DNA of 64,000 nucleotides, taken from positions 62,001 through 126,000 of the IMG/VR virus record IMGVR_UViG_3300042892_005961; one strand, given 5' to 3'. The translations under genes were made by a program, and so were the position numbers. Positions 258 through 49,233 of this stretch are shown piece after piece. The stretch's first letter is position 1. Each line of letters starts with the position of its first letter. Under the pieces are notes generated by a model. It worked only from the letters and a program-made list of their open reading frames with translations. It was not told the DNA's origin and did not search any database.

Positions 258-815
258 CTAAATAAGTGTTTTTGTTTTATTAATTCTATATTTGTTACCA
301 ATTGGAAATCCTATATTTTTAACTTCTTCTATATTAAGATAATTAACAATTTTTTTAAATCCATTATTATAATATAATTCTTCGTAAGAAATTGTAAAAA
401 AATCTTTATTAACATATTTTTCTTTAAATTCAGATTTTAATATCTTAAAATATTCTGTTTTTTCTTTGGTAATTGAATTTTCTGATGTTTTATAAACATA
501 TGGTAGATGCCAGTTATCCGTATTTACCGCATTTAAAAATGATTCCAATTGTTCTTGTGTATTTTCTCTATATAGTACAATAATTTTATCGGATACATTT
601 AACAATGAATTCCAATTTAAAGTAGGATAATATATTTCTTTAATACAAAGATGTTTAGTTTTATATTTATAATCTTTTGGGTCAATATTATTTTGAAACC
701 ATTTACTATTAGGATTTTCCGGTTCAAATAGTGTGGTAAAGTTTTTATTAAAATAAAACCAATTCGTAAGATTTGTTGAACCACTTCTCGGTTCTGCTAA
801 AATTGTGATAATCAT
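258..815 (-). CDS. Sulfotransferase-like protein
   Basis: N-terminal ILAEPRSGSTNL matches the 5'-phosphosulfate-binding loop (xxRSGST); LYRENTQEQLES and ISYEEL resemble later sulfotransferase motifs. Confidence 0.6.
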   Translation of the reverse strand: MIITILAEPRSGSTNLTNWFYFNKNFTTLFEPENPNSKWFQNNIDPKDYKYKTKHLCIKEIYYPTLNWNSLLNVSDKIIVLYRENTQEQLESFLNAVNTDNWHLPYVYKTSENSITKEKTEYFKILKSEFKEKYVNKDFFTISYEELYYNNGFKKIVNYLNIEEVKNIGFPIGNKYRINKTKTLI

Positions 816-833: not shown

Positions 834-1421
834 TTAAAGTATTGTTTTTTTTTCCTTTAAAATCGGAAAATCAAATAATACATTTGCGGCAATTACAATT
901 CTATCGATAGTAGAATTAATTGAAGTATCAGGTCTATGATATACATCTGCAGGGAAAATAACAAGTTCATTTTCTTCTGGTAAAAACATCCTTTGTACAT
1001 TATCTTCTTTATCCATAAAAAATAATTTACCATCGTTCCCAGTTAAATTATTTGGCATTTGTACATAATAAGTGAATGTGCAATTGCTTTCTATTGATTT
1101 TTTTACATGTGGAGCAAACATTGTGTGGTTATGATAATGAGATTGTGTATCCTCATCCCTAGAAATAAAAATCCAAGAATATAAACAATAATCAACTTCT
1201 TCAACTTTTTTATCTTTTTTAAATAATTCTATACATCTCTTAACACCATAATTTAAAATAAAATCAATTTCTTTACATGTTAATACTATGTTAGTTTGAA
1301 TACCTGGTGTCAGATGTGATGGTTCATAATTAAATAATGATACGTTTTGATATATTTTTTTTATCAAAATTTCTTTTTCATATGGATATTTTATTTTTTC
1401 TCTATATATTTTATCAATCAT
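834..1421 (-). CDS. Putative 2OG-Fe(II) oxygenase
   Basis: HYHNH (HxH), TFTYYVQMP, DGKLFF, LVIFPADVYH and RIVIAAN give the DSBH oxygenase layout. Confidence 0.7.
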   Translation of the reverse strand: MIDKIYREKIKYPYEKEILIKKIYQNVSLFNYEPSHLTPGIQTNIVLTCKEIDFILNYGVKRCIELFKKDKKVEEVDYCLYSWIFISRDEDTQSHYHNHTMFAPHVKKSIESNCTFTYYVQMPNNLTGNDGKLFFMDKEDNVQRMFLPEENELVIFPADVYHRPDTSINSTIDRIVIAANVLFDFPILKEKKTIL

Positions 1422-2032
1422 AGTAAACTAATTATATTTTTTGTTTTAAGATTTGTTTCATAAATCCACCCACTTATAGAATATCTTTTATAATTTTTAT
1501 CAATAATTTCATCTACACAATGTAAATCTTTTATATTTTCAACATCAAAAATATTTAAACTATTAAATTTGGGTAATAATTTGTATGTAATATTATTTTT
1601 ATCATCTATGAAGTTTAAGCAACCACCTTTTTTTTCATCTGCATCTTTTGTTAAATTGTAAACAAAAGCATATTTTCTACCCAAAGATACATCGTTATGT
1701 GGAGATAAAAAATGGCCATATGTATATTTTGAGACAAATACACTCTGTGCTGTAAAAAACTTATCTTCTAACAATTTACTAATTTCTAATTCCAAATTTA
1801 ATAGAAAAAATAAGTTTTGTATAAATTCTTTGTTTTCAATACTACTATACCAATATGAAAATTCACCTTCTTTAAATTTTGATTTTTCATATTCATAAGA
1901 TTTTTTATGTTTTGAATTTGTAATCCAATCAGTTTGAGAATCGATTATATCATATACATTATTTGCAATACCATCAGATAAAAAATTTTCTATTTGTATT
2001 GGTTTTTTTTTTAATTCTTCAATATACCCCAT
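1418..2032 (-). CDS. Prolyl-4-hydroxylase-like 2OG-Fe(II) oxygenase
   Basis: KYTYGHFLSPHND (HxD), GGCLNF, distal His in LHCVDEI, and RYSISGW. Confidence 0.75.
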   Translation of the reverse strand: MGYIEELKKKPIQIENFLSDGIANNVYDIIDSQTDWITNSKHKKSYEYEKSKFKEGEFSYWYSSIENKEFIQNLFFLLNLELEISKLLEDKFFTAQSVFVSKYTYGHFLSPHNDVSLGRKYAFVYNLTKDADEKKGGCLNFIDDKNNITYKLLPKFNSLNIFDVENIKDLHCVDEIIDKNYKRYSISGWIYETNLKTKNIISLL

Positions 2033-2043: not shown

Positions 2044-2733
2044 TTATACTAAATTACCTTTTTTTACAAATCTTGATTCAAAAGTATCCCACAAAAAAGT
2101 TTTTAGTTCATTATTAACTTCTATTTTATTTTTTATTTTTTTAGTATCGTTCATTTTGGTAATTTCTAATTTTACTCCAAATTTATTGTTTATAAAATTA
2201 ATAAATTTATCAATTTCGGTTATATCAAATTCGTATGTACATTTTTCATTTTCTTTCCAATATTTTTGGGAATTAAAAATATATAAAGTACCAGGTAGAT
2301 TTTTATTTATTTTTATAAATAAACTATTATAATAGTTTTGCACTTCAGACTGGTTTTCAGAATATATAGCATTTGCAAAATTATTATTAAAATGTTTGTA
2401 TATAAATGCATTATCAACATCTTCCCAATTACAAATTAATTCATTATTATGTTGTATTGCAGAAGAATAGAAAAAAAATTCAAATGCACTTAATAATCTA
2501 TCTAACCAATTTCTTGTTATGCAAATAGTATCTTTATGACCAAAATAATCTATACAATCTTTTTTTCTACTATGAAAATGAGGGATAATTTTATTTTTAG
2601 ATTCTTCTATTAAATGTGTTCCACTTATAATTTTTTTTATATTTAAAGATGAATTATAAATTGAGTTTTCAATTGAAACCGATGCGCATCTTGGAATTGA
2701 TATCCAAATTAATTCATTGTTAATAAGAAACAT
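2044..2733 (-). CDS. Sulfotransferase family 2-like protein
   Basis: WISIPRCASVSIE resembles HIPKT(A/G)GTS; ITRNWLDRLLSAF resembles the RxPxxRxxSxY 3'-phosphate motif. Confidence 0.6.
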   Translation of the reverse strand: MFLINNELIWISIPRCASVSIENSIYNSSLNIKKIISGTHLIEESKNKIIPHFHSRKKDCIDYFGHKDTICITRNWLDRLLSAFEFFFYSSAIQHNNELICNWEDVDNAFIYKHFNNNFANAIYSENQSEVQNYYNSLFIKINKNLPGTLYIFNSQKYWKENEKCTYEFDITEIDKFINFINNKFGVKLEITKMNDTKKIKNKIEVNNELKTFLWDTFESRFVKKGNLV

Positions 2734-2744: not shown

Positions 2745-3008
2745 TTAGATTATATTTTTTTGTTTATTTTCTGAAAAATATTTAAAATCAACATCGTCCC
2801 ATTTTCCTTTAGGACATGCATTTTGTTTTTCAGAAAATATTTTTTTTGAAAGTGGGCAACCACAGGCCGAACAAATAGGTTTTTTAATTACATATTTTTT
2901 ATATTCACATGTACCACATATGTTAGCTCTATTTAATGCAAGTGTTTTTTGGCCTTCATTTGGATTAAAAGAAATAATCCACGCATTAATTATCTCCGCA
3001 ATTTTCAT
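2745..3008 (-). CDS. Small Cys-rich, probably metal-binding phage protein
   Basis: R..ICGTCE ... CSACGCPL ... CPKGKW pattern (CxxC, CxxCGC, CPxxKW). Confidence 0.7.
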   Translation of the reverse strand: MKIAEIINAWIISFNPNEGQKTLALNRANICGTCEYKKYVIKKPICSACGCPLSKKIFSEKQNACPKGKWDDVDFKYFSENKQKNII

Positions 3009-3125: not shown

Positions 3126-4634
3126 TTATAATGGTAAACAAACCAAACTTGGTGAAAAACAAGGGCCTCCACCATTGTAGGTACAATATTCATACATTTT
3201 GTCGCATCCACCAGCACCAATTCCAAATGTGTTACAAGGTTGACATTGGTAATTATGTTCAATTGCTACAAACATACCATCATTTGTTTTGGTTAGGAAT
3301 AAATGTTCATCTTGAACAGTTATTGTCCATCCGTCAAACCCATTAACACTATTCGTTATATTTGTAACGGTTTTTTCTACCACACTTACTGTTTCTAAAT
3401 CATCTGTCTGAACTAAAAGGATTTTATCACCAATTTGTAACATATCTAATGTAGTATCTTCCAAATTTAAAGCAGTCCATTTAACAATATCTCCTCTTTT
3501 TATTAGATATTGTGATATTGATGTATCTTCCCACGTTGTATTATCATCAAATGTAATAGTTGTCATTGGTGACAAAACATTTGATTTTTGTTTACCTAAA
3601 ACTACATTTGTTGAAAATGTTGAGTTTGATAAAAATTCAGTAAAATTAACACTATATCCTCTAAGTTCATCTGATTCTGTTAAATTTGGTTGATTTTCGT
3701 ATAACTTTATTGTTTTTACCACATCTCCAACTTGTAATTCTAATCCTGTCTTATATGACCCATCTGCCATCATAACCAAATCGTCATCCATTAATTTTGG
3801 TTTATTAATAGTTTGTGTACCTGAAATATATGATTTTCTGAAATTAGGATTTACTTCAAACGTTTCAGTATCGTAAGTGACATCTTCAAATAATTGAACA
3901 TTACCATGTTTAGTATATGCTCCAATTGCAATTGATTCTAATGTAGGTGGATATAATAGATTATATGAACGAACTACTGTTGCAGTATTATTTTCAATTT
4001 TTTCAGCGTTAAAATAATACTCCATTAAAAAATATTCATTAGATACATTTTGTAATACTACATCTAATTGTTCTTGAGTTGCAACTTTAAAAAATTTAGG
4101 ATATTCGTTTCTATCATATACTGGATATTTTGCTTTTAAAACAAAATTTGGGTGAACTCCATTGTCGTTAAATGTTGTAATGTTTGACACTAATTGGTTT
4201 GACTCATCCATATAAGCAAATTGACTACCAAATTCGGTAGATTGTATTAACTTTAAAAAGTTTACCTTATCTTTACAATAAGTTTCATCTACAATTGCGG
4301 TTACATCATATGCACTTCTTATGATTAAATGAGTTTCCGAATCCTCTACATATGGGATAGTAATATTATTTGCAACCTCACTAAATACATATTCTATGTT
4401 TAGTGTCACACATAATTCTTGTAATTTTTTCTCAAATTGTATTATTCCACCAATATATGTTACTTTTGTAAAATTATTAGAAGCTATAAAGTTGGTTAAT
4501 TCGTTTAAATCAAATGTGTTATCAATTTCTGTTTGAGTCATTCGATTCATACCTGCATTAGTATTTATTTCAATTGGTTTTAAATTACCTAATGAATTAT
4601 ATACTAAATCGGTCCCTAATAATACTGTTCTCAT
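3126..4634 (-). CDS. Circularly permuted ATP-grasp-like domain fused to a Hint domain and a Cys-rich C-terminal peptide
   Basis: N-terminal GTDL...PIEINTN (ATP-grasp D..ExN motif at the N-terminus), then FVLKAKYP and FLMEYY. Hint blocks: LVMMADGSYKTGLELQVGDVV, LQIGDKI, WTITVQDEHLF, IEHN. Then a 41-aa tail with 6 Cys. Confidence 0.6.
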   Translation of the reverse strand: MRTVLLGTDLVYNSLGNLKPIEINTNAGMNRMTQTEIDNTFDLNELTNFIASNNFTKVTYIGGIIQFEKKLQELCVTLNIEYVFSEVANNITIPYVEDSETHLIIRSAYDVTAIVDETYCKDKVNFLKLIQSTEFGSQFAYMDESNQLVSNITTFNDNGVHPNFVLKAKYPVYDRNEYPKFFKVATQEQLDVVLQNVSNEYFLMEYYFNAEKIENNTATVVRSYNLLYPPTLESIAIGAYTKHGNVQLFEDVTYDTETFEVNPNFRKSYISGTQTINKPKLMDDDLVMMADGSYKTGLELQVGDVVKTIKLYENQPNLTESDELRGYSVNFTEFLSNSTFSTNVVLGKQKSNVLSPMTTITFDDNTTWEDTSISQYLIKRGDIVKWTALNLEDTTLDMLQIGDKILLVQTDDLETVSVVEKTVTNITNSVNGFDGWTITVQDEHLFLTKTNDGMFVAIEHNYQCQPCNTFGIGAGGCDKMYEYCTYNGGGPCFSPSLVCLPL

Positions 4635-4652: not shown

Positions 4653-4662
4653 ATAAATACTT
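4653..4662 (-). promoter_or_regulatory. AAGTATTTAT motif (candidate late promoter)
   Basis: Exact copy of the 10-mer also found upstream of fibre genes at 45371, 52660 and 60187; 18 nt upstream of the ATG at 4634. Confidence 0.5.
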
Positions 4663-4876
4663 ATTTTTTATCTTTTAGTCCAAATTTTATCCATTTATAC
4701 CAAATTCTTTCATGAAGATAATATTGAATGGGTTTATATATCAGTTCTACCACCCCGAAAGCCGTACCAACCTTGATTGATCCACTTACCCACCATATTA
4801 TTAAAAACCCAATAAGAGTACTTACAATACGATATGAGATGGTTTTAGCAATATGTCGTTTACGTTCTACTATCAT
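4661..4876 (-). CDS. DUF2061-like small membrane protein
   Basis: RHIAKTISYRIVSTL ... YYLHERIW pattern with two hydrophobic segments; adjacent to APS kinase. Confidence 0.7.
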   Translation of the reverse strand: MIVERKRHIAKTISYRIVSTLIGFLIIWWVSGSIKVGTAFGVVELIYKPIQYYLHERIWYKWIKFGLKDKK

Positions 4877-5259
4877 TTGTCATTCATATCAGGATATTCT
4901 ATAATATCTCCGTTTGAGTCAATATACCCGTTTCTGATACTTGTACCACTAATTTTAGCAACTTCTTCAGGTGGTTCGTGGTAAATAACATCATACCCAA
5001 CTCCTCTACCATAATTAATACTCTCAATATCAGGAATAATGGATATGTTAATTCTATGTGAATTTTCCTTAAAAAACGGTTCGTCCGATAAATCCATCAT
5101 TACTTGTTGAGCCGTTTTAGGGTTATTCTCATCTGTCTCTACATTTCTAATAGCCACCCACACATTCTTCCCCTTTTCTAATTGTTGATTAAGTAACCAT
5201 TCGTGGCCCTTGTGCCAATTCTGCCAGCGTCCTACATACATTGCATATTTCTTACTCAT
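4873..5259 (-). CDS. HIGH-superfamily nucleotidyltransferase (cytidyltransferase-like); candidate minimal ATP sulfurylase
   Basis: GRWQNWHKGH (HxGH) and C-terminal ISGTSIR; overlaps the APS kinase stop codon by 4 nt. Confidence 0.7.
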   Translation of the reverse strand: MSKKYAMYVGRWQNWHKGHEWLLNQQLEKGKNVWVAIRNVETDENNPKTAQQVMMDLSDEPFFKENSHRINISIIPDIESINYGRGVGYDVIYHEPPEEVAKISGTSIRNGYIDSNGDIIEYPDMNDK

Positions 5260-5693
5260 AGTGTTAATTTTTTTAATATTTCATAATAAGAATCTACTTC
5301 GGTTTTATCCGTTGTATCCAAATCTATAAAGTTTTCGGTAGGTGGTTCGTAGTTCTCTACGTGAAACTGATTTCTACCTCTATCCTCTGTCGTGCGTACA
5401 TAAACCTCAATAACATCTTCTCTATTCTTAAAGTCCTCTCTTTGGTCTTTATATGGGGAAACTAAGGATACCAAGACCGTAAACCCCTTTTTATTCAAAA
5501 ATTGAGCGATGTCTTGTGCTCTTTCAATATTTTTTTTCCTTCCCACCTCAGAATAGTCCTTATTTTGGAAAATGTCCCTTAAATCGTCCCCATCTATAAT
5601 AATAGTATTCTCCTTACCAAAATGGGTTAGGAGGTTGTTTACTAACGTAGTTTTACCAGATGCGGGTTGTCCTGTGAACCAATATATTGACAT
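5256..5693 (-). CDS. cysC: Adenylylsulfate (APS) kinase
   Basis: WFTGQPASGKTT P-loop, DGDDLR, VSLVSPY, YEPP. Confidence 0.9.
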   Translation of the reverse strand: MSIYWFTGQPASGKTTLVNNLLTHFGKENTIIIDGDDLRDIFQNKDYSEVGRKKNIERAQDIAQFLNKKGFTVLVSLVSPYKDQREDFKNREDVIEVYVRTTEDRGRNQFHVENYEPPTENFIDLDTTDKTEVDSYYEILKKLTL

Positions 5694-6450: not shown

Positions 6451-6567
6451 TTAGTGGTTATAAATAAACGGATCTCTTTTACGTAATTCTTCTAATTTCT
6501 TTTTAAATTCCTTCTTTCTTTTCTTGTCAGCAAAGTATTTCTTCACCCAATTGATTAGTTTTTTCAT
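6451..6567 (-). CDS. Small basic peptide, 38 aa (MKKLINWVKKYFADKKRKKEFKKKLEELRKRDPFIYNH)
   Basis: Hand-translated, below the ORF track cutoff. Starts at a TAATG overlap with the upstream stop and fills the gap exactly. The LRKRDPFIY ending resembles a small conserved phage family (from memory). Confidence 0.65.
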   Translation of the reverse strand: MKKLINWVKKYFADKKRKKEFKKKLEELRKRDPFIYNH

Positions 6568-7259
6568 TATATTATATTTTTAAGTTTATCATTTAATAAG
6601 TATTCGTAAAACATTCTGTTCATTTTTTCACTCCAATGATCGTCGCCAAAAATACCACGTTCACCATTTGAATTAATATAATCATCTTGGAGGGTCTCCC
6701 AAAAATTTATATTTTTTTCCAAGATTTTCCTATCCTCAATGTTACTATTTTCATAGTTTAAATTGTCCCACGAAAAAACATACACATAAGATGGTGTGAT
6801 TTTAATTAAACTATCAATTATTTCAAGATAATTTGAATGTGAAGATTCAGTTGAATTAAAAATCTGACACATTTTTATTAATTCTTCATTTAAATAATCA
6901 AAACCATCTATGTTTTCATTACCTTTTGACTCCGCACCAATAAACTTATTTACAAATTTATAACCATTAACATCAAATTTGTACCAATTATCTTTTTTTA
7001 AAGGTAACCTTGTTCTGTGAAATGCCGGTAAACAAATTATTAAAATGTCATCTTGTTTTAAATTGGGGATTGATATTATCCATTTATCAATTATTGTTTG
7101 TACATCTCTACTTGGTTGTCCGTCCACAATAACGTTATAATTTAATACATTTTCTTCTATTAATCTCGTCCACGTATGTAATTTATTTATTGAAATTAAT
7201 TCATATAATTTGTCCGTTTTCATAACAAAACTATCTCCAATAATTAAAAATCTTTTCAT
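6567..7259 (-). CDS. SGNH-like protein
   Basis: IIGDSF at the N-terminus and GDDHWS near the C-terminus. Confidence 0.55.
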   Translation of the reverse strand: MKRFLIIGDSFVMKTDKLYELISINKLHTWTRLIEENVLNYNVIVDGQPSRDVQTIIDKWIISIPNLKQDDILIICLPAFHRTRLPLKKDNWYKFDVNGYKFVNKFIGAESKGNENIDGFDYLNEELIKMCQIFNSTESSHSNYLEIIDSLIKITPSYVYVFSWDNLNYENSNIEDRKILEKNINFWETLQDDYINSNGERGIFGDDHWSEKMNRMFYEYLLNDKLKNII

Positions 7260-11006: not shown

Positions 11007-12319
11007 TATATTAAACTTTCAAAAAATTGATAATCTTTTTCAACAATATTCAACATGTTCCATACTTTTTGTTTATTGTCTTCAAATCTTTGTTTATTGT
11101 TCTTATAGAACTCTTTAACTTGGTCTTGTATTCCGTCTAATCTTTTTATTTCTTCAACAAACATTTCTAATCTTCTCATTTGATTTGGTTCGTTGTCATA
11201 TGAATGATTAATAATATCATCAAAAAAATCAAAATTATATTTCTCTTTCATTGTTTTAATATGATATTGTGTTGCGAGTATCATTGGTAATTGATAATAA
11301 AAAAATGGTCTGTAAGATTTCTCACTAATATGTGTTACGAATAGGTCATCAAAAAATTTAGATTCGGTGACAATATTAATATATGAGTTTTCGTAGTTCA
11401 TTCCAAATTCGGGTATTCTCATCCACGAAGGAAAACCTTCTATGTTTGGTTCTTTAAATAAATTAAACCAATCTTTATTTTTTTCCATATCACTTCTCTT
11501 GAACTTAATATCGTTGAAAAAAATTATTTCATCTTTGAAATATTCTTTTTGTTCTCTTGTAAAAATTTTATCATAATAATGTCCTATTGGAAAACAATCG
11601 TATGGTGGTACCAAAGACCAATTAATTTTTTCTAATAGTCCTTCTTTTTTCAAAAAACATAACAAAGCGTATCTGTGATGTTTTGGTGTTTTATTAAAAC
11701 ACATAAACATTTTACCTTCCTTGTCATCAACCCAATTACATCCTCCTGCATTTGTCAATGAAAAATTAGACGAATGTGCAATGAAATGTAACGTATGTAC
11801 ATTTATTCCACTATTGTGTTTAATTTTAAGGTCATTCAACCTTTCATTATTATTAATTACGTAAAATTGTTTTGGGTCTAAATTTCTATGTTCAAGATAT
11901 TCTAATAATCTAATAAAACCGCTTTCATAATCCGGTTCGTGTTCTGTTATTATAATTACTTTTAAATTTTTACATTTTTGTAAACATTCAATAACCTCTT
12001 CACTTAATGGTGATTTTTCAAACTTCTCTGTGGCCTTTTCTTCATTCTCAACAAATAAATTTATTATATCGATATTACCGTGTGCAATTGGGTAATAAAA
12101 ATTTAAATCAGGTCTAAAATAAACTTCACTTAAATTGTGTGATTTAATTTCAAATTTATTTTGCTCCTTTGTTTCTATTTGAAAATGTAATAATAGATGT
12201 TGGAAATTAAATGTGAACCTATCTCCTCCATTGTATTTGAAGGTATTGGTTTCACTATCCCATCTATCATAACAAAGATTTAATATCTTGTTTTTTTCCT
12301 CCATAATAAATTGTGTCAT
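11006..12319 (-). CDS. GT-B glycosyltransferase, GT10 (fucosyltransferase)-like
   Basis: FMCFNKTPKHHR and YINIVTES...HISEKSYRPF...LP (GT10-type xEN/ES...TEK motif), DHSYD. Probable start at the second Met (MEEKNK). Confidence 0.55.
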   Translation of the reverse strand: MTQFIMEEKNKILNLCYDRWDSETNTFKYNGGDRFTFNFQHLLLHFQIETKEQNKFEIKSHNLSEVYFRPDLNFYYPIAHGNIDIINLFVENEEKATEKFEKSPLSEEVIECLQKCKNLKVIIITEHEPDYESGFIRLLEYLEHRNLDPKQFYVINNNERLNDLKIKHNSGINVHTLHFIAHSSNFSLTNAGGCNWVDDKEGKMFMCFNKTPKHHRYALLCFLKKEGLLEKINWSLVPPYDCFPIGHYYDKIFTREQKEYFKDEIIFFNDIKFKRSDMEKNKDWFNLFKEPNIEGFPSWMRIPEFGMNYENSYINIVTESKFFDDLFVTHISEKSYRPFFYYQLPMILATQYHIKTMKEKYNFDFFDDIINHSYDNEPNQMRRLEMFVEEIKRLDGIQDQVKEFYKNNKQRFEDNKQKVWNMLNIVEKDYQFFESLI

Positions 12320-13442
12320 TTAATTTTCTTTCTCTCCACGGATCCACAACAATACTACCTTCAGGAAATATTGTTTCATTAAAAATACCTCTATGTCCTA
12401 ATAAATAAACCGCCGGTTCTTCAATCTTATCAAAATCAACATTTTCTTTGTAAGTAAAGTTAACATAATAACCAACTAGTACTGAATATGAACCTTCCGT
12501 AAATTCCACACCTGGTTTATAACTTTTACCCATAATAATAATTGGTAAATTGTGTTGTCTTGCTTGTCTAACTAATTTATCGGCTAAGTTTTTCGCTTGA
12601 ACCTCTCTTGTTTTCATTATTGAATCAAATAAATCATATCCCAATCCAAATCTTTGTGAAAGATATCTTAATGCGATATTATCTCTTGGGTGACACGAAC
12701 CTCCGTCACCCATACCCGCTTTCATATATGCGGGACCTGTGATTCTATTGGTACTTCTTTCTAATGCTCCCGTTACTACATCTGTATTCATACTACCGTT
12801 TTTCTCGGCGATGTCTTGAATCATGTTAACCAAAGTTAATTTTGCTGATATAAACGTATTGTAAAATATTTTTATACCCTCCGCTTCATCCCAATTACCA
12901 ATTTCATATCTTGTGCCGTGTGTTACTATTGTATCATAAAAATCTTTCAATATTTTTGCATCCGTTGTTGTTGATCCGTCCTCAGTTCCAATTATAATCA
13001 TTTCAGGATTGACCATATCATGTTTAACGGTACCCATAGCAATTAGATATGGATTATAAATAAATCTATAATTTCTAACTAATGAATAAAATTGACTTCT
13101 TGTTGTACCGGGTAGTACTGTTGATATTAGTACCACCAATTGTGATTTATTTGTATACTCATTTAACTCATTTAAAATACCTTGTACAATTGTATAGTCA
13201 AAATCTTTTGGTGGTAATTGTGCCATTGGTTGACTACCATCATATGCTGGATCATGTGGTGTTGGTACCGCAATGAATATTATTTCTCTATCTTTACAAA
13301 CATCCTCTAAAGATGTTGTCATTGTAAATTTAGTATCGGTGACTAATTTTACATCATAACCTAACACATCGTGACCGGCTTCGTACATTACTTCAGCCGC
13401 ATCTTTACCTAATTTACCAATTCCAATAAATCCTACTTTCAT
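12267..13442 (-). CDS. ugd: UDP-glucose/GDP-mannose dehydrogenase family protein
   Basis: GFIGIGKLG, IAVPTP, STVLPGT, YNPYL, KIFYNTF, GDGGSCHPRD (catalytic Cys), GKSYKP. Confidence 0.85.
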   Translation of the reverse strand: MKVGFIGIGKLGKDAAEVMYEAGHDVLGYDVKLVTDTKFTMTTSLEDVCKDREIIFIAVPTPHDPAYDGSQPMAQLPPKDFDYTIVQGILNELNEYTNKSQLVVLISTVLPGTTRSQFYSLVRNYRFIYNPYLIAMGTVKHDMVNPEMIIIGTEDGSTTTDAKILKDFYDTIVTHGTRYEIGNWDEAEGIKIFYNTFISAKLTLVNMIQDIAEKNGSMNTDVVTGALERSTNRITGPAYMKAGMGDGGSCHPRDNIALRYLSQRFGLGYDLFDSIMKTREVQAKNLADKLVRQARQHNLPIIIMGKSYKPGVEFTEGSYSVLVGYYVNFTYKENVDFDKIEEPAVYLLGHRGIFNETIFPEGSIVVDPWRERKLNDTIYYGGKKQDIKSLL

Positions 13443-15772: not shown

Positions 15773-16588
15773 ATGGATTTATCAAAATATAAATATTTTT
15801 ATGTAAATGGGTCATCATACTGTGAAGGTGGTGGTTTAGAGGAACCTGAAATAAGAGATGATAGTGTTATTCCTGAATATCAAAAACAATTTGGGGTTAC
15901 TTGGTCAGATAGATCTGAAGTTAATTTTGGTAAACGATTATCTGATATAATTGGAATACCCTGTATTAATGAGGCTAAGTGCGGTGGTGGGATGGAAAGG
16001 TTGGTTAGAAAGACATATGATTTTATTGATACTCATTGGTACGAAAAAGATGAGTTTTTTTTAATATTGGAAAAACCTGATTCAACAAGATTTGAATTTT
16101 ACTTTAACGAAATTAAAGATTATTATATTGCTAACTCCGTTTTTAAAAATGAAGACTATAACCTTGAATTTTCTTACGCTACAAGATCGTATAATAATAA
16201 ATTACTAAATGAATTTGATAAAAAATATCAAGATAAATTCAAACAATACTTTTTAGATTTTTTTAATTTAGAAGAAAACATTAAAAAGAATGAACTACAA
16301 TTTGTTGGTTTATACTCTTTTTGTAAATTGAATAATATTAAGGTATTTGTTATGTCTCCTAATAACATATATTTTAAAAGATGTTTTAATAGTGAAGACA
16401 TAATTTCATTCACAAAATATAATATTGGTGATGATATCGCTGGATGGTGTAAAAATAATAATTTATTAATTAAAGATGAAATTGGTAATGAGTTTAATGA
16501 TTTTCATCCTGGTTATTTCGGTCATTTAGAATATGCTAAGGAGCTTGCTAAATTTTTAGAAAAAAAAGAAAATAAAAAATTAATATGA
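15773..16588 (+). CDS. SGNH-like protein
   Basis: VNGSSYCEG, NEAKCGGG, DFHPGYFG. Confidence 0.55.
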   Translation: MDLSKYKYFYVNGSSYCEGGGLEEPEIRDDSVIPEYQKQFGVTWSDRSEVNFGKRLSDIIGIPCINEAKCGGGMERLVRKTYDFIDTHWYEKDEFFLILEKPDSTRFEFYFNEIKDYYIANSVFKNEDYNLEFSYATRSYNNKLLNEFDKKYQDKFKQYFLDFFNLEENIKKNELQFVGLYSFCKLNNIKVFVMSPNNIYFKRCFNSEDIISFTKYNIGDDIAGWCKNNNLLIKDEIGNEFNDFHPGYFGHLEYAKELAKFLEKKENKKLI

Positions 16589-24206: not shown

Positions 24207-24638
24207 TTATCCTTCCATTTCTTCATCTTTCTTTGGCCAACTAACTTCCCAATCTTTAAAATCTGCAGCAATACAATCAATTTTATAATCTTTTCTACCA
24301 CCAACAACTTCTTGTATTTTATTCTTTGCAGTATTCCTAATACCATTTAATCCGTGTGTCAATGCCAACATACTTGGTCCTTCTTTTCCACTTCTTACAT
24401 TAGATTCATTATGCCAAATGTGTAAATTCATCTGTGCACATACAATAACAGCTCTTAACATTTCACCAGTAATTACAACATCTTTTTCACTTAATATAAG
24501 TTGTATATCATGTGTAATGTCTGCAATTTCTTGAGCATACTCTTCTTTGTGTTCGGTTATAAAAACCTCTTTTAATTGTACAATTGATAATCTATCAAGT
24601 AATTCCGATAATGTCGGTAAAAATCTTCTTTGTTTCAT
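24207..24638 (-). CDS. Helical hypothetical protein (DUF6165-like N-terminus)
   Basis: PTLSELLDRLSIVQLKE N-terminal helix; a family often found in glycan clusters (from memory). Confidence 0.5.
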   Translation of the reverse strand: MKQRRFLPTLSELLDRLSIVQLKEVFITEHKEEYAQEIADITHDIQLILSEKDVVITGEMLRAVIVCAQMNLHIWHNESNVRSGKEGPSMLALTHGLNGIRNTAKNKIQEVVGGRKDYKIDCIAADFKDWEVSWPKKDEEMEG

Positions 24639-25936
24639 TATATTAATGATTTATATTTTAGTTTATTTGTTTCTTCATTACAATATCTTTTCATTTCTAA
24701 ATACGCATCAGGAAATCTAAATAATTTCTCAATCAATGCATTATAATTATATTCAATCGTATCTTCCATTGATTTAAACCACCCAATTTTATCTTCTATA
24801 TTAACCACCTTTCTAATTGATTCAATTAGATATTGAAGTCTCTCATGTGTTGGTAATGTGTCATATCCTTCATCTATAAAACCATCAAAAGTCTTATATC
24901 CAATTTTTCTCATCATATTAAGACTATCTTTATTACCCATTATCATATATGGGTGTCTACAAGCTAATACTTTAAATGTTTTTTCACTTAAGAACATTGT
25001 TTGATCACTATCACCACAATGTGCTTCACTAATGACCGTAACAAATGTATCCAAACAAATATCATCATTAAAACGATTAATGTAGAAACTATCATCTAAC
25101 TCATTATTAGGTTTTTCATAAACTAATAAAGGTAGTCCTTTAGTAATTTCATTCAATAATTCTTCTTCCATATGTTTCCCTTCCCATTGATACCAATGTT
25201 TTGGAAAATCATTCATACTAACTAATCCGTCTTTTAATAAACCAGAATGATAAAGATAATTGTAGAACCAAACTCTCTGTGGTCTAATTCTTTTATTTAA
25301 ACACGCAAACGATTTTAATTTTTCAGGATGTGTAAGTTTATAATTAATATGATCTTGAAATGTTGGTAACGGATGTGCTTTCTCACCTTTAGATCGACCA
25401 TAACAAGTCATACCCATATCTAATTCAAAATGTGGGTATGGTATAACCTTTAATTTTTCAATTATATTATTATCTTCACACCATTTATCATAAACCACAT
25501 CTGCAATCATATTACCTGTTACATATATGATACGTTTTGGTGATACATCCCACTCTTGACATTGTTTATGAAAATAATCCCACAGCCATGATGTTTGATA
25601 ACCTTCTAAACTTTGATCTAACATTAAGAATGCTTTTTTATCTCTTAAATCTTTTAAGTATTTTTCATTAAGATGAAAAAAGAAACTTTTGACTCTTGGG
25701 TTATAACCTGTCCAATCATCGGGACTATGATTTACCGAAACTGGTATAATATATCCGTTTTTTTCGTCACTAGCGGGATAATATTGTAATTCACTATGTT
25801 TGTCATGTGCTTGAACGTATATCTGTGTTGCAGTTAATAATGCTGAAATACCAAACCTACCAATACCAGATGGATTAATATCATTACATGATGTAAAATT
25901 TGCTAACTTTTCTGTGTCCTCAAATAAGAAATCCAT
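24638..25936 (-). CDS. GT10-like glycosyltransferase paralog
   Basis: FACLNKRIRPQR, TVISEA...FLSEKTFKVL...HPY, DEGYD. Confidence 0.55.
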   Translation of the reverse strand: MDFLFEDTEKLANFTSCNDINPSGIGRFGISALLTATQIYVQAHDKHSELQYYPASDEKNGYIIPVSVNHSPDDWTGYNPRVKSFFFHLNEKYLKDLRDKKAFLMLDQSLEGYQTSWLWDYFHKQCQEWDVSPKRIIYVTGNMIADVVYDKWCEDNNIIEKLKVIPYPHFELDMGMTCYGRSKGEKAHPLPTFQDHINYKLTHPEKLKSFACLNKRIRPQRVWFYNYLYHSGLLKDGLVSMNDFPKHWYQWEGKHMEEELLNEITKGLPLLVYEKPNNELDDSFYINRFNDDICLDTFVTVISEAHCGDSDQTMFLSEKTFKVLACRHPYMIMGNKDSLNMMRKIGYKTFDGFIDEGYDTLPTHERLQYLIESIRKVVNIEDKIGWFKSMEDTIEYNYNALIEKLFRFPDAYLEMKRYCNEETNKLKYKSLI

Positions 25937-25938
25937 TA

Positions 25939-27393
25939 TTAAATTGGTTTATTATAATTTTCTTTATCTGAAACATATACACCTGGCTCAAAATGAGTTA
26001 TTCTACCATCAGTCATTGCCACATACGGAATTGTATTATCAATTACTAATGAATTGTACCAATCTTCCAATTCAGGGAACGTCTCAACAAAATTCTTATT
26101 TCTACGAATATCATATTGAACATAAAAACTTTTAAAATCATGATATTGCATTGACATATCCATTTCACTTGTATTATGACCTCTATTAACAACTTCGATA
26201 TAATCAATTAATCTTTGAATTTGTGCTCCTTCATTCATATTAATTAATGGATTCTTTTTATGTTTTCTCCACCACATTGATAACTTACCATGTAAATCAT
26301 GCTTGACGTCATCTGGTAATGTAAGTGGTGACATAAATGCTGGCCATCTTAATATGTTAAAATCTACAACTGGTTTATGTGTTCCGTATTTTTCTTTTAA
26401 TTTCAACATATCATCTAAAAATTCGGTAATGCTAAATAAACACAAACTATTAATTGTCATCATGATAACAACTTGTCTAATTTTAGCACTCTCAATTACT
26501 TTAACTAAATTACTTCTCCATAGTTCATAATTTAATCCATCTCTAATATATTCCGCTTGCTCACCATAAGCTTCACAACTTGTATACAAATCGAATTCTT
26601 TGATATCTAATTCGTGAGATATACTAATTAACCTATTCACAGTCGTTTCGTTAAGACCTAGGTTAGAATTGACTGCAAGTCGTAAATTAGGGGATGGGTA
26701 TTGTTTCATTATATCCATGAACTGCCAAAAATTACGTGACTGTGATGGTTCTCCACCAGTTATACGTATTTCCATTAATTTTTGAGACAATTCAGGCCAC
26801 CATTTTAAGAAAGCATCCACATATGGATTGTTTTCATTGTATTTACCATAAATCTCTGACCAAGAACCATCTGCGTAATATGCACCTGCACTTGTGGTTT
26901 TAAAATTTTGATATGGTCCGTTATCTCTAATATCTTTACCCCATGTTGTTGAGTATCCTGAATTACAATATGAACATGCAAAATTACATGTTCTATCAAA
27001 ACTAACCTCCATAGTTTGAGGTATAATGTCAGCATCCCAAGGTAATTCATTTAACGCCGCAATATCTTCAGGACTATATATTTGACTTTTATATACCCTA
27101 TCGGAAATATTATTTCTACCAATATCCTCAATCTTCCAACAGTAAGAACATTCCGCCGGTTTAACACCCTCTAACATCATTTTACGGATTTCCTTTTTGA
27201 AATCGGTATTATGTAATGCTGCAGGGTTGGTTTTAATTGCTTCAACATCTATTGGATGTGGTAATGGTAGGTGACATGAATTTGTAAACCCATGACCTAA
27301 ATGTAAACTTACGTTTAACCATTTAGCAGCACAAAAACTACAACTTACTTTATTTAAATGTTCATCTCTCCAATCACTTAAGTGTTCTGACAT
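25939..27393 (-). CDS. Radical SAM enzyme with an extra N-terminal Cys cluster
   Basis: CNFACSYC, ITGGEP, NSN; N-terminal CAAKW...SCH and CSYCW. Confidence 0.85.
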   Translation of the reverse strand: MSEHLSDWRDEHLNKVSCSFCAAKWLNVSLHLGHGFTNSCHLPLPHPIDVEAIKTNPAALHNTDFKKEIRKMMLEGVKPAECSYCWKIEDIGRNNISDRVYKSQIYSPEDIAALNELPWDADIIPQTMEVSFDRTCNFACSYCNSGYSTTWGKDIRDNGPYQNFKTTSAGAYYADGSWSEIYGKYNENNPYVDAFLKWWPELSQKLMEIRITGGEPSQSRNFWQFMDIMKQYPSPNLRLAVNSNLGLNETTVNRLISISHELDIKEFDLYTSCEAYGEQAEYIRDGLNYELWRSNLVKVIESAKIRQVVIMMTINSLCLFSITEFLDDMLKLKEKYGTHKPVVDFNILRWPAFMSPLTLPDDVKHDLHGKLSMWWRKHKKNPLINMNEGAQIQRLIDYIEVVNRGHNTSEMDMSMQYHDFKSFYVQYDIRRNKNFVETFPELEDWYNSLVIDNTIPYVAMTDGRITHFEPGVYVSDKENYNKPI

Positions 27394-27439
27394 ATTGGTG
27401 TTTTTTTTATAATATAAACTTTATTATTGACATATGAAA

Positions 27440-28177
27440 TTATATAATAAATTCTTTTGGTACCTTTTCTAAGAAATTACTATTTTTAGATTCATCGTAT
27501 ACTATACCTAAATTATTAACTGTTTTAAAATCATATAAACAGACGATATCATCATAAAATCTATTTTTTAAAATTACATCGGTTTCCTTTTCATATATAC
27601 TTTTAGAATCTTTAATGTTTGAAGTTTTACTTATTAATGAAAAATGATTCATTTCTATTTTAGTAAAACCTCCAAATGTGTTTGGATGTGGACTTGGACT
27701 GCAACAACCGATAAATAATCCAGGTCTTTTGTAGTCATCGACAAACTCATTGGTGAAATCAATATGATTGTCCTCAACAAAGTTTTTATAAACGGTTATT
27801 CTATTTTCATCTCTAATAATACTAACGGTCATTCCTTTTTCAATATCTTCTTTAGTTACTGATTTAAATACAACATTATTATAACAATCTTCAGATTCAG
27901 TGGTTGTCCAAAATTCAAAACATAACTCCCCTTGTGGTTTATTATAGCTTAATCCCATATTTTTACCTGATTTACCAAATATCATACGAACATCCTCACC
28001 CTCGTAGTTGTCTTCTATTTTAAAATTACATGTAATAATAAAATTTTCGTTGTAAAAAAAATCAGTTACTGATTGATTTTCAGATTTATTGAATTCGGTC
28101 ACATATTGATTTTCGTGGTGTGTAGATAAGTCCCATTGAAACTTTAACCAATACGGTTCTCTATAATTTATTGTCAT
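27440..28177 (-). CDS. Stand-alone LamG/ConA-like domain protein, homologous to the two N-terminal repeats of the next gene
   Basis: IFGKSGKNMGLSY, FEFWT, LFIGCCSP and EMNHFS align with repeats in 28161-30983. Confidence 0.55.
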   Translation of the reverse strand: MTINYREPYWLKFQWDLSTHHENQYVTEFNKSENQSVTDFFYNENFIITCNFKIEDNYEGEDVRMIFGKSGKNMGLSYNKPQGELCFEFWTTTESEDCYNNVVFKSVTKEDIEKGMTVSIIRDENRITVYKNFVEDNHIDFTNEFVDDYKRPGLFIGCCSPSPHPNTFGGFTKIEMNHFSLISKTSNIKDSKSIYEKETDVILKNRFYDDIVCLYDFKTVNNLGIVYDESKNSNFLEKVPKEFII

Positions 28178-30983: not shown

Positions 30984-32412
30984 TTATAAACATTGTATTT
31001 GGGTATATCGTCTCATCAACACTTATGATATCCAATACGTCTAATATTTTATTTAATCCGTCTTCTTTATAATCTATCTTTTTTTGTTGCATTTCAGTAA
31101 CAAATCTTTTCTCATTTCTTGCGGTCGTTTCTCCTTTTGCCCATTTATCAATTCCATCAACTTTAATAAATCCTTCATCCTCATGAAACATACACTTAAA
31201 GTTACCTTCTCTTCTTATTGGAATAATATTATCTACAACTTCGATATTTTCTTTAGTAATTTCAGTATTAAGATTTTCACATATTATGTTATTTACCTTA
31301 TCTAAATAACCATTCTCAAAATCCATATGTAAAACCAAACTTTTTTCTTTACTAACCGACGTTTTTATATTTTTATAACACTTGTCATATATTTTAACTT
31401 CAGCAATTTGACCTTTAAAATATGTTTTTTGGTTGCTACAAAACCCTAATATAAATGGATTGGTGTTATCGTGTTTTTTAAGGTTTTCTCCGACCATGAA
31501 TGGTTTATTCTCTTTAACATCGTTTACGTTAGTAACTAATTCATTGTTAACAAAGAAATACATTTCTTTTGTTTTATTATCAAATGAAACTGTCACCCAC
31601 GTCCATTCATTTTCAAATTTCTTAACCCAATTATTATGATAATTTTCGTTTTTATCAAAAACTGTCATGTTAACCGTCCTTGAATTATTAAAGGATAACC
31701 CCCATGTCCAAGATTCGTGTTTTCTTAATATTGGGTATTCAATAAATTTCTTTTCTTTGTCACCAACCAACCAAATAGGCACTTTCTCTTGTTGTTGTTC
31801 TGCTTTAAATAATACAGAAATAGTATGATTACCAGATAAACATTTACTTATCTTTTCGTTTGTTGGTATAACCACTAATGAATCATCTCCATTAAAATTT
31901 ACAACCGATTTTTCTTTATGTGATTTAAAAATCTTACCATCTTTATAACCCTCAAAATAACACCTCCAAAAAAGATCATCATCTTCTTGACCCCAATCCC
32001 AATATTCGTTTGAATAACCATTGGTTTGATACGCTTGTTCTTTGGTAAATAAAACAACACCTCCAAAGTATTGATCATACCCTAATGTGTAATTATACTT
32101 TGATAATTTGGTTGCAATATGAACTGGTGATTTTTCAGGATAGGAGTAATCACAAATTAAATTATCTTTATCGATTGCTAACATATCCACGTCGTGCCAA
32201 GCTACATAATCACAACCATCTTCAAAAGCATAATGTGCTGCAATGTTTTTTGTTGCCCCTCTATTAAATAATTTATCATCAACTTGATGTCCAACATAAA
32301 ATTTATGTTCTATTCCTTTTTCGTTTAAATATTTTGATAAATGTGGTATCAAATTCTCAATGTGTTCCTTTCTATTTCTGTACGGTATACAAATACCTAA
32401 TTTATGACTCAT
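30967..32412 (-). CDS. GT7 (beta-1,4-galactosyltransferase-like) glycosyltransferase with an inserted LamG domain
   Basis: IPYRNR, FNRG, HDVD, YFGGV, NGYSNEYWDWGQEDDDL; then a LamG segment (FKGQIAEVKIYD); the GT7 tail resumes at RREGNFKCMFH. Confidence 0.8.
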   Translation of the reverse strand: MSHKLGICIPYRNRKEHIENLIPHLSKYLNEKGIEHKFYVGHQVDDKLFNRGATKNIAAHYAFEDGCDYVAWHDVDMLAIDKDNLICDYSYPEKSPVHIATKLSKYNYTLGYDQYFGGVVLFTKEQAYQTNGYSNEYWDWGQEDDDLFWRCYFEGYKDGKIFKSHKEKSVVNFNGDDSLVVIPTNEKISKCLSGNHTISVLFKAEQQQEKVPIWLVGDKEKKFIEYPILRKHESWTWGLSFNNSRTVNMTVFDKNENYHNNWVKKFENEWTWVTVSFDNKTKEMYFFVNNELVTNVNDVKENKPFMVGENLKKHDNTNPFILGFCSNQKTYFKGQIAEVKIYDKCYKNIKTSVSKEKSLVLHMDFENGYLDKVNNIICENLNTEITKENIEVVDNIIPIRREGNFKCMFHEDEGFIKVDGIDKWAKGETTARNEKRFVTEMQQKKIDYKEDGLNKILDVLDIISVDETIYPNTMFINVKTK

Positions 32413-40733: not shown

Positions 40734-41203
40734 TAAACGTATCTTGTTAAAATTGGTGATGTTATCGCATTGGCGTTTGGTGCAAATAATGTTATATTAA
40801 CTAAACATGTGGCATTTCCCCACGATACATTATATTGGTTTGTAAATCTTAACCAACTTTTAGAAGCACTCGTTGGGTCTTGATAATATGAAAATGTTAT
40901 TAATTGGTCGTTAGTTGGTCCTGATGTTGTTTGTAAACCATATTGTGATAATGCAAACCAAACATTTTGAGTACCATTATAACTTTGATATGATAAAAAA
41001 CTAATATACCCCGTTACCCATTGCCAATTATTATTATTACAAAGTACATCCGTATATGGTGTCGCAGTATAGTAAGGTGAAGTTACGGAAACATTACCAC
41101 CCCATTGTTGTAAAGCCATTGCATTAGAACAAATTGTACTACTCGCATTTGACGTAGATGTTGCATTGTATGTTGTTACCGTTGTACCTATTAATGTTGC
41201 CAT
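40733..41203 (-). CDS. Small fibre-tip protein, paralog 3 of 3
   Basis: MATLIGTT N-terminus; SQYGL, WLRFTN, PILTR. Confidence 0.55.
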   Translation of the reverse strand: MATLIGTTVTTYNATSTSNASSTICSNAMALQQWGGNVSVTSPYYTATPYTDVLCNNNNWQWVTGYISFLSYQSYNGTQNVWFALSQYGLQTTSGPTNDQLITFSYYQDPTSASKSWLRFTNQYNVSWGNATCLVNITLFAPNANAITSPILTRYV

Positions 41204-45309: not shown

Positions 45310-45330
45310 ATATATGTGTTCTAAATCCTT

Positions 45331-45367
45331 GTGATATATATCACGGTTAAAGACCTATGTAGGTCTT
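45331..45367. repeat. Two adjacent inverted repeats in the fibre gene leader
   Basis: GTGATATATATCAC (45331-45344, perfect palindrome) and AAGACCT-ATGT-AGGTCTT (45350-45367). Confidence 0.75.
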
Positions 45368-45370
45368 ATG

Positions 45371-45380
45371 ATAAATACTT
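45371..45380 (-). promoter_or_regulatory. AAGTATTTAT motif (candidate late promoter)
   Basis: Exact 10-mer just downstream of a terminator and upstream of the 1163-aa fibre gene. Confidence 0.55.
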
Positions 45381-45390
45381 GTTATAAATA

Positions 45391-45419
45391 AAAAAGGAGA
45401 CTTTTTATAGTCTCCTTTT
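45391..45419 (-). terminator. Intrinsic terminator
   Basis: AAAAGGAGACT-6nt-AGTCTCCTTTT stem followed by a T run on the minus strand. Confidence 0.8.
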
Positions 45420-45422
45420 GTT

Positions 45423-45593: not shown

Positions 45594-45618
45594 TTTAATT
45601 TAATTTTATTTAATTTTA

Positions 45619-48786: not shown

Positions 48787-48805
48787 TTTATATCTATCTT
48801 TATTT

Positions 48806-49198: not shown

Positions 49199-49206
49199 AG
49201 TACTCT

Positions 49207-49216
49207 ATAAATAGTT
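49207..49216 (-). promoter_or_regulatory. AACTATTTAT motif variant (candidate late promoter)
   Basis: One mismatch to AAGTATTTAT; lies between a terminator and the next ATG. Confidence 0.45.
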
Positions 49217-49233
49217 TATTTTTCTAATAAGAC

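Follow-up and report, generated by a model that had tools for sequence, protein, structure and literature searches.

What could a virus achieve by joining an enzyme-like domain, a Hint (hedgehog/intein) domain and a hypervariable Cys-rich peptide in a single protein? The question is raised by an open reading frame (ORF) of 502 amino acids (aa) encoded in a 64,000-nucleotide stretch of DNA, here called the window, which spans positions 62,001 to 126,000 of the IMG/VR virus record IMGVR_UViG_3300042892_005961. An original prediction, made from the letters of the window, described the ORF product as a circularly permuted ATP-grasp ligase fused to a cleave-only Hint domain that should free a 6-Cys peptide, possibly the ligase's own substrate. 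The translation of the ORF (3126-4634, minus strand) holds every motif that was quoted for this proposal, each in its place. The computational analysis described here favours a related reading, to which slightly better than even chances are given: the protein would be a self-processing precursor-enzyme, in which the Hint domain releases the Cys-rich peptide and an ATP-grasp-type N-terminal domain (N-domain) acts on this peptide or organises its modification. The parts of the protein, with the evidence for each (structure models by AlphaFold2, AF2, with their predicted local distance difference test, pLDDT; hidden Markov models, HMMs), are the following:

3126-4634, minus strand: ORF, 502 aa, comprising N-domain, Hint domain and Cys-rich tail (ATG start; stop codon 3126-3128)
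3804-4634, minus strand: N-domain, residues 1-277, ATP-grasp-like (AF2 pLDDT 81 for the domain-only model; Foldseek; conserved residues)
4551-4634, minus strand: beta-hairpin, residues 1-28, with D9...E22-x-N24 as putative Mg2+ ligands (hhalign to DdlB and RimK)
4122-4151, minus strand: PNFVLKAKYP strand, residues 162-171, with K167 as candidate ATP-phosphate-binding Lys (Lys in 116/117)
3252-3797, minus strand: Hint domain, residues 280-461 (Foldseek against PDB; residue census; family HMM)
3252-3257, minus strand: H460-N461, predicted asparagine-lyase site, bond N461/Y462 (conservation)
3129-3251, minus strand: hypervariable tail of 41 aa with 6 Cys and 4 Tyr, the predicted released peptide (AF2 pLDDT about 33)
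3198-3206, minus strand: C477-D478-K479, a C-x(1-2)-K motif (present in 167/167 unique tails)

The ORF belongs to a large family which has so far escaped annotation. A search of 5.8 billion proteins returned at least 653 homologs of about 485-515 aa, with identities of 45-97%; those that bear a name are all called hypothetical and none carries a Pfam domain. With a single exception, the homologs lie on viral or unbinned metagenomic contigs. Likewise, 299 proteins were retrieved by an exhaustive scan of 1.84 billion representatives with an HMM of the N-domain, and in every listed match with an intact N-terminus this domain forms the start of the protein. Among one genome each of 185,579 prokaryotic species a single match was found, on a 2,044-bp contig (L086, CAIWXP010000069.1) which had been binned in the metagenome-assembled genome of a Candidatus Diapherotrites (DPANN) archaeon and is probably a mis-binned viral contig; given this one match, on a small contig of an archaeal bin, a cellular origin of the family was rejected. 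The number of homologs of the same length, a ratio of non-synonymous to synonymous divergence (dN/dS) of 0.04-0.5 among close relatives in N-domain, Hint domain and tail alike, and the invariant motifs described below indicate that the ORF is more than a chance reading frame. The ORF product has no match in Pfam, PHROGs, NCBIfam or PDB, either as a single sequence or with profiles.

The host of the gene is a large uncultured myophage. The window belongs, at 100% identity, to a 211-kb IMG/VR contig (locus label L004), is very AT-rich (GC 22-42%), and has genes for giant proteins with collagen repeats, for a D12 methylase and for proteins of the tail-fibre and baseplate type; a contractile-tail sheath is encoded on related contigs, the longest of which measures 335 kb. 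In a set of 50,697 cultured phage records no match was found for the window by megablast, nor for the ORF, for the small protein Zn94 encoded next to it, for a neighbouring 2-oxoglutarate (2OG) oxygenase or for one structural protein; judged by sequence, the lineage of this phage is without a cultured relative.

The Hint domain and its predicted cleavage site

An AF2 model was built from a 34-sequence alignment (mean pLDDT 78.7, pTM 0.74), the tail alone being left unmodelled. Across residues 280-459 the pLDDT is mostly 80-90, and the best Foldseek match in PDB for residues ~280-461 is a bacterial intein-like (BIL) domain, the BIL2 domain of Tetrahymena BUBL1 (6y75, E 9e-9, TM 0.71). The same search returned the Ssp DnaB mini-intein (1mi8, E 2.3e-6, TM 0.68), the gp41-1 intein (6qaz, E 1.9e-5, TM 0.67), the hedgehog autoprocessing domain (1at0, E 5e-5, TM 0.67) and the Mtu RecA intein (3ifj, E 9.2e-5, TM 0.67), and many of the matches of the model in BFVD are phage proteins labelled 'Hint domain containing'. 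The Hint fold that had been read from the letters at 3252-3797 is the one on which model and structure search agree, and residues 280-461 are modelled with near certainty as such a fold. At the sequence level, the Pfam models Hint, PT-HINT and Intein_splicing match neither the ORF product nor any of 33 relatives, even at E 10. A sequence bridge from the family to the known Hint models is offered by the remote relative P0431, which is reached by the HMM of the family's Hint region (residues 262-425, E 2e-28) and is matched by Pfam PT-HINT at residues 298-413 with 21.3 bits, under the cut-off of 27.7 bits.

The catalytic positions were surveyed over 252 homologs in the intein nomenclature of PMC4031507, with blocks B and F assigned by reading of sequence patterns and not by structural superposition. 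The domain opens with P-K-L-M-D-D-D-L-V (residues 279-287), in which position 1 is K280 (3795-3797); Lys is found there in 211 of the 212 aligned homologs, and Cys, Ser or Thr never. The remainder of block A is kept (L-x-D-x-D-x-V...D-G...G-D-x-V). Block B reads T371-S-I-S374 in the ORF: the Thr at B:7 is retained in 211/252 homologs, and the canonical His at B:10 is Ser in 236/252 and is never found. Moreover, the canonical Asp at F:4 is Gly in 232/252. That the N-terminal acyl shift should be dead had been proposed from the single sequence, and the residues involved turn out to be exchanged throughout the family (Lys for Cys1, Ser for the block B His and Gly for the block F Asp). At the other end of the domain, His at G:6 (H460) is present in 242/252 homologs and Asn at G:7 (N461) in 250/250 aligned ones; in the 34-sequence alignment both E459-H460-N461 and P279-K280-L281 are invariant. 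The residue at +1 can be any (Y, V, A, L, E, N, F and others), with Cys in one sequence alone. The pattern suggested as a check of the original prediction, an essentially invariant His-Asn (HN) pair followed by a tail that varies, is what the homologs display. The two computational outcomes named beforehand as able to refute that prediction, a missing Hint fold and an HN pair not conserved among homologs, were both looked for, and neither was seen. From these sequences the family seems to keep the asparagine-lyase end of the Hint reaction, with all that the N-S acyl shift and splicing need being gone. A true, splicing intein was rejected, as nucleophiles are missing from both position 1 and position +1.

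The same conclusion can be approached from the remote relatives, in which other cargo follows the HN pair. This pair closes the Hint region in 57 of 59 diverse representatives, whose cargo behind it measures 23 to 1242 aa, and in most remote relatives the cargo is a Cys-rich tail. In P0359, P0371, P0382 and P0356 a Peptidase_S74 module, an intramolecular chaperone/autoprotease, comes after the Cys-rich segment, with the S-D-x-R-L-K site present (e.g., P0359). Peptidase_S74 is typical of phage tail fibres and spikes. In P0420, P0357, P0365 and others, a short or Cys-rich peptide lies between the cleave-only Hint and a second Hint, which is canonical (Cys1, TxxH, HN) and, in relatives of the P0420 type, is followed by just Lys-Lys; the second Hint of P0420 matches both PT-HINT and Intein_splicing at E 1e-12. 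The double-Hint layout is, by analogy, that of engineered intein-based peptide cyclisation; alternatively, it may reflect a BIL-type insertion close to the tail end. Other relatives carry 145-1242 residues of protein, including a BACON domain in P0431. The occurrence of the same segment between two self-cleaving modules is the best argument that the bond between N461 and the +1 residue is cut, and C-terminal cleavage at N461 is regarded as likely.

The Cys-rich tail and the N-terminal domain

Tails in the core family measure 23-97 residues (median 38), and the number of Cys is even in 162 of 167 unique tails, mostly 6 or 8. The C-x(1-2)-K motif is the sole sequence motif common to all of them. 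In its stricter form, C-x-K, it was observed in 142/167 tails, against at most 55 in 500 composition-preserving shuffles. Apart from this motif, tails of different subfamilies cannot be aligned. Among close relatives both dN and dS of the tail exceed those of the body, with a tail omega of 0.1-0.5. Furthermore, dS differs between N-domain and Hint domain in close relatives: between L004 and L008 it is 0.27 in the N-domain, 0.03 in the Hint domain and 0.73 in the tail, and synonymous divergence differs several-fold by domain when the window ORF is compared with L005, L007, L008, L009 and L011. Such a mosaic of dS among the three parts points to recombination breakpoints at the domain borders. 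Taken as sequences, the tails are those of a functional peptide and not of a linker. A diversity-generating retroelement was considered as the source of tail variation and rejected: the window DNA holds no template-like repeat of the tail, and tails that differ in length and Cys number are at odds with this mechanism.

The N-domain is probably of the ATP-grasp type. The motifs GTDL...IEINTN and LMEYY occupy residues 7-26 and 203-207, respectively. By hhalign, the hairpin at residues 8-32 aligns to residues 256-280 of Escherichia coli DdlB, which hold its Mg triad D257/E270/N272 (E 1.9e-3, or E 2.3e-4 at a probability of 44% once both profiles are made broader), and residues 6-31 align to residues 245-269 of RimK. 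A homolog search with E. coli DdlB, aimed at a diverse template, yielded enterobacterial sequences 84-100% identical alone. Over 117 diverse representatives D9 is conserved in 98%, E22 and N24 in 100%, and R106, D116, K167 and R222 in 98-100%, which speaks for a working active site. With the full-length model, Foldseek matched yeast glutathione synthase in PDB (1m0t, E 5e-4). Yeast glutathione synthase is the textbook example of a permuted ATP-grasp.

The order of the elements in the N-domain is Mg hairpin, Rossmann-like part, 'DK' helix, PNF-x-L-K strand, hinge F-L-M-E and R222 strand, and, among 150 listed representatives, the hairpin is found at residues 1-28 in each one whose N-terminus is intact. 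A de-permuted alignment to DdlB and RimK is collinear, with Lys strand, hinge and Mg hairpin in the correct order. At the level of motifs, these sequences argue with moderate strength for a classical ATP-grasp whose last hairpin has been moved to the front. The permuted ATP-grasp is nevertheless the weakest of the structural claims and stands in part: the Mg hairpin aligns to DdlB and RimK and ATP-grasp enzymes lead the Foldseek results, with weak scores, and no sequence model recognises the remainder of the domain. In fact, outside the hairpin sequence models and profiles found no similarity; curated ATP-grasp models in the Pfam, NCBIfam and PDB profile searches gave no match, one member reaching ATPgrasp_ST at E 0.68; and a profile search with the N-domain alone, aimed at stand-alone relatives, was filled with family members. 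Foldseek depends on the order of elements, and a permutation would depress its scores.

Partner genes, proposed mechanism and competing explanations

Gene calling and clustering were carried out over 72 related loci. A constant core, in the order target ORF, Zn94 and ST229, is kept across loci whose neighbours are otherwise different. In the window, the genes around the ORF are the following (APS, adenosine 5'-phosphosulfate; PSB, phosphosulfate-binding; 'tagged' refers to a C-terminal motif described below):

2745-3008, minus strand: Zn94, 87-aa zinc-ribbon protein with 6 invariant Cys, conserved downstream partner gene
2044-2733, minus strand: ST229, divergent Sulfotransfer_2-like protein, third member of the core module (5'-PSB-like motif)
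1418-2032, minus strand: 2OG-Fe(II) oxygenase, tagged, of a tailoring-enzyme class
834-1421, minus strand: 2OG-Fe(II) oxygenase, tagged, of a tailoring-enzyme class
258-815, minus strand: PRSGST-motif sulfotransferase-like protein, tagged (motif alone; no match in Pfam or NCBIfam)
4661-4876, minus strand: DUF2061 membrane protein, upstream, often linked
4873-5259, minus strand: HxGH nucleotidyltransferase, 128 aa, upstream, often linked
5256-5693, minus strand: APS kinase, upstream, often linked
258-815, 834-1421, 1418-2032, 2745-3008 and 6567-7259, minus strand: window ORFs with the C-terminal tag
12267-13442, 15773-16588 and 24638-25936: further window ORFs with the C-terminal tag

Proteins of the Zn94 family, of ~90 aa, have W10, R27, K56 and W70 invariant besides the 6 Cys, and are, whatever the type of tail, a single conserved family in which 11 positions are invariant; a role of Zn94 as immunity protein was rejected, as it is too conserved. 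In the ST229 family (~229 aa), Sulfotransfer_2 was found in one member (E 5.5e-5), and heparan sulfate 2-O-sulfotransferase is a weak match of the profile. The genes upstream vary, one common set being carbamoyltransferase, APS kinase, HxGH nucleotidyltransferase and DUF2061. The last three may represent a minimal set for the supply of 3'-phosphoadenosine 5'-phosphosulfate to the sulfotransferases; the nucleotidyltransferase at 4873-5259 matches, weakly, solely models of the NMN/pantetheine-phosphate adenylyltransferase type. Downstream, related loci encode several 2OG-Fe(II) oxygenases, a second sulfotransferase-like family, an Asp/Asn beta-hydroxylase, a SET protein, twitch/SPASM-like and B12 radical S-adenosylmethionine (SAM) enzymes; a Trp halogenase is encoded in one relative as well. 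A gene of a sulfotransferase family lies at most 8 genes from the target in 64/66 loci, and radical SAM genes occur in 41/66. By analogy, the 2OG oxygenases, hydroxylase, radical SAM enzymes and halogenase fit a tailoring of peptides. The Trp halogenase gene (L088 1220-2446) is located three genes upstream of P0420, and the inter-Hint peptide of P0420 holds two Trp; this is anecdotal support for an action of neighbouring enzymes on the peptide. A second paralog is present at L042, on the same contig as the window but ~38 kb off and outside it; it is 46% identical, ends in an unrelated 8-Cys tail, and has its own Zn94 and ST229 among otherwise unrelated neighbours.

Unrelated enzyme families encoded downstream of the target share a C-terminal tag, K-[TSN]-[LIM]-[ILVF]-COOH (K-T-L-I type), which was also scored in the related loci L001-L083. 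It is found in 60-100% of the 2OG oxygenase clusters, Zn94, the Asp/Asn hydroxylase, both sulfotransferase-like families and both radical SAM families, in 42% of DUF6071 and in 3-12% of all other ORFs, and in 0% of the target, carbamoyltransferase, APS kinase, nucleotidyltransferase and DUF2061. Since its codons differ between genes, the signal lies at the protein level. From its sequence the tag looks like a docking or sorting signal, and its resemblance to class I PDZ-type ligands suggests recruitment to a common partner. RimK/LysX/TTL-type ATP-grasp enzymes bind protein C-termini, and by this analogy the target N-domain is a candidate for the tag-binding partner.

According to the favoured reading of a self-processing precursor-enzyme, N461 would cyclise to a succinimide and the N461/Y462 bond would break, as in inteins, A-type BIL domains and pretoxin-HINT, yielding a peptide of 41 residues and 6 Cys whose alpha-amino group is newly formed. 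The N-domain would then carry out an ATP-dependent ligation or cyclisation on the released peptide, for which the one invariant Lys, the new N-terminus or the C-terminal carboxylate would be the groups likely to be used. Alternatively, or in addition, neighbouring enzymes would dock on the N-domain and modify the tail while it is still attached. Zn94 and ST229 would take part as obligate partners. The peptide would be fast-evolving and exchanged by recombination, as expected for a molecule engaged in an arms race (a toxin, a signal or a receptor blocker), and the end product would be an effector that diffuses or is delivered. It is less likely than not that the ligase has the tail as its own substrate. 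A fuller scheme is considered improbable: 2OG oxygenases, sulfotransferases, radical SAM enzymes and Zn94 may be recruited through the K-T-L-I-type tag and tailor the tethered tail, which would be released by the Hint domain and then closed or ligated by the ATP-grasp site, the latter perhaps using the newly exposed amine or the invariant Lys. On this scheme the double-Hint relatives may make a similar product through thioester chemistry, as a natural counterpart of intein-based cyclisation.

Several observations weigh against a self-processing precursor-enzyme. The His at F:13, an aid to Asn cyclisation in inteins, is present in just 159/252 homologs (63%). Asp and Glu are missing from 24 of the 167 tails, which means that a side-chain crosslink of the graspetide type is not the general reaction, and graspetide chemistry was rejected on this account. 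Disulfides are not expected in a reducing cytoplasm, and neither an export signal nor a transporter was found. Neither domain of the ORF product is recognised by Pfam, NCBIfam or PDB sequence models. The ATP-grasp assignment draws on a 25-residue motif alignment and on weak Foldseek scores, the best domain-only matches being LysX/ArgX, ITPK1 and PurK at E 0.03-0.4 and TM about 0.3; the de-permuted alignment scores no better in hhalign than the hairpin alone, and a glycine-rich lid loop was not seen in the N-domain. Finally, the neighbouring enzymes would also fit an island for the modification of glycans or lipopolysaccharide (LPS), given the sugar epimerases, dehydrogenase and carbamoyltransferase nearby.

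Among the rival explanations, an unlikely one is that N-domain and Hint domain are a conserved launcher, comparable to the N-terminal portion of polymorphic toxins in bacteria, the Hint releasing whatever cargo is fused to it, a Cys-rich peptide in this protein and large proteins that bind carbohydrates in others, and any activity of the N-domain being unrelated to that cargo; on this view, the protein would be carried by the virion, inside or at its surface, or would act at a late stage of infection. The swapping of cargo behind a constant N-domain-Hint-HN unit, from Cys-rich tails to the 145-1242-aa cargo with BACON, would be expected of such a polymorphic effector, and so would the recombination-like mosaic of dS in the tails, the match of PT-HINT to the equivalent region of P0431, and the S74 chaperone domains, typical of tail fibres, in some relatives. 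P0431 is encoded directly upstream of a tail sheath gene, and the sheath gene of L003 is ~5.6 kb away; a HINT immediately before a toxin domain has been described as a releasing peptidase (Zhang et al., 2012, PMC3482391). However, signal peptide, PAAR, Rhs, LXG, MuF and other known trafficking domains were not found, a hypervariable immunity gene is missing and Zn94 is one conserved family across tail types, the invariant and catalytic-looking residues of the N-domain argue for an enzyme rather than an anchor, and the conserved sulfotransferase and zinc-ribbon partners are left unexplained.

Less probable still is that no cleavage takes place, the Hint being a degenerate scaffold that presents an attached Cys-rich knob, held by metal or disulfides, for binding to the host surface, to a phage partner or to the tagged enzymes. 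The loss of all the N-terminal catalytic residues and the incomplete conservation of the block F His (just 63%) would agree with this, as would the lack of a confident AF2 structure for a tail whose 6-8 Cys in ~40 residues could hold zinc or an Fe-S cluster in the cytoplasm. Yet Asn in 250/250 and His in 242/252 at the last Hint strand, whatever follows, are hard to understand without catalysis; a second autoprotease borders this segment in relatives, and a metal site should keep its Cys spacing, whereas here both spacing and number vary. The most remote of these alternatives places the protein among the enzymes of an island for glycans, LPS or sulfation, as an ATP-grasp ligase whose substrate is a small molecule or is linked to a sugar, with Hint and tail as a regulatory or autoinhibitory appendage removed on activation. 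Carbamoyltransferase, APS kinase, nucleotidyltransferase, dTDP-sugar epimerases, a UDP-glucose dehydrogenase-like protein and sulfotransferases are indeed present, and a similar cyanophage cluster of carbamoyltransferases and 2OG oxygenases has been read as serving to decorate polysaccharides or to make secondary metabolites (Iyer et al., 2021, PMC7824862). On the other hand, an inhibitory appendage needs neither an even Cys count nor a universal C-x-K, nor purifying selection together with rapid diversification, and the second paralog keeps Zn94 and ST229 alone, without sugar genes.

Comparison with known systems and the wider window

By analogy, the closest known mechanism is the release of polymorphic C-terminal modules by A-type BIL domains and pretoxin-HINT (PT-HINT, PF07591; PMC3482391, PMC4031507). 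These share with the family a Hint fold directly before a hypervariable C-terminal module and a C-terminal His-Asn without a +1 nucleophile, from which cleavage and not splicing is expected; the best PDB match of the family's Hint, 6y75, is itself a BIL domain. They differ in the N-terminal Cys/Ser and the block B His, both of which are retained in BIL and PT-HINT domains and are Lys and Ser in the family. PT-HINT hosts are secreted filamentous toxins carrying a nuclease or deaminase domain, whereas the family protein starts with an enzyme-like domain and carries a Cys-rich peptide of ~25-100 aa; the family is also almost exclusively viral and its ORF product is reached by no Pfam Hint model. 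More generally, polymorphic toxins have the same layout of a conserved N-terminal part, a releasing peptidase and a recombining variable C-terminal module. In hedgehog and Tetrahymena BUBL proteins, which are among the closest solved structures (6y75, 6tmm, 1at0), the Hint domain likewise releases or transfers an adjoining module and is not a selfish intein, but it acts via an N-terminal Cys thioester that is absent from the family, in which the released part is C-terminal to the Hint.

As for the N-domain, the Asp...Glu-x-Asn motif, the Lys strand and the Arg residues are shared with permuted ATP-grasps (eukaryotic glutathione synthetase; CP_ATPgrasp_1/2) and with RimK/LysX, and an element order unlike that of the classical ATP-grasp is common to the family and the permuted enzymes. 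In glutathione synthetase the cut point is reportedly different, the family moving just the last hairpin to the N-terminus. With respect to glutathione synthetase, RimK and LysX, the lid domain of the family is short, and no HMM-level similarity extends beyond the hairpin. Like LysX, which is paired with LysW, the family is encoded beside a small zinc-ribbon protein, but Zn94 ends in a basic K-T-L-I-type tail and LysW in an acidic one. [quoted passage not shown] In contrast to RiPPs, its 'leader' would be of 461 residues, holding a ligase-like enzyme and its own protease; the conserved core Asp/Glu of graspetides is lacking (24/167 tails are without either), Lys being universal instead, and the radical SAM genes expected from SCIFF/ranthipeptides occur at just the 41/66 loci mentioned above. 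None of the NCBIfam RiPP models reaches its cut-off. The main text of a graspetide survey contains no occurrence of 'phage', and no fusion of ligase and precursor was noted in it (PMC8939145); in full-text searches of the literature no description was found of an ATP-grasp-Hint fusion or of this family, nor of a Hint as the built-in protease of a RiPP leader.

The family looks like a previously undescribed viral way of making small bioactive peptides. If so, large environmental phages would have a compact means, independent of a separate protease, of making knotted or otherwise constrained peptides, and hundreds of natural variants of such peptides would already exist. Diffusible peptides made by phages could serve superinfection exclusion, host manipulation or the killing of competitors, and are poorly explored. 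A pure C-terminal asparagine-lyase Hint with Lys1 and a new permutation of the ATP-grasp would be added to those known, several hundred 'hypothetical' proteins without a Pfam family would gain an annotation, and both the small cleave-only Hint and a natural 'enzyme-leader' could become tools for peptide production. Should the enzyme at the N-terminus itself serve as the leader of a tailored peptide, phages would be the source of a new class of ribosomal peptide natural products with an entire enzyme for a leader.

Elsewhere in the window, large genes are found at 24638-33824 (minus strand), among them three for proteins of 432-481 aa without a PHROG family and two with radical SAM signatures, at 28161-30983 (940 aa) and 25939-27393 (484 aa). 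At 41818-60166 (minus strand), collagen triple-helix repeats are present in large proteins of 1163, 1116 and 492 aa, and the genes for these are accompanied by others for proteins of 1055 aa (no Pfam match) and 1980 aa. A small protein encoded at 41203-41814 resembles the distal ends of long tail fibres.

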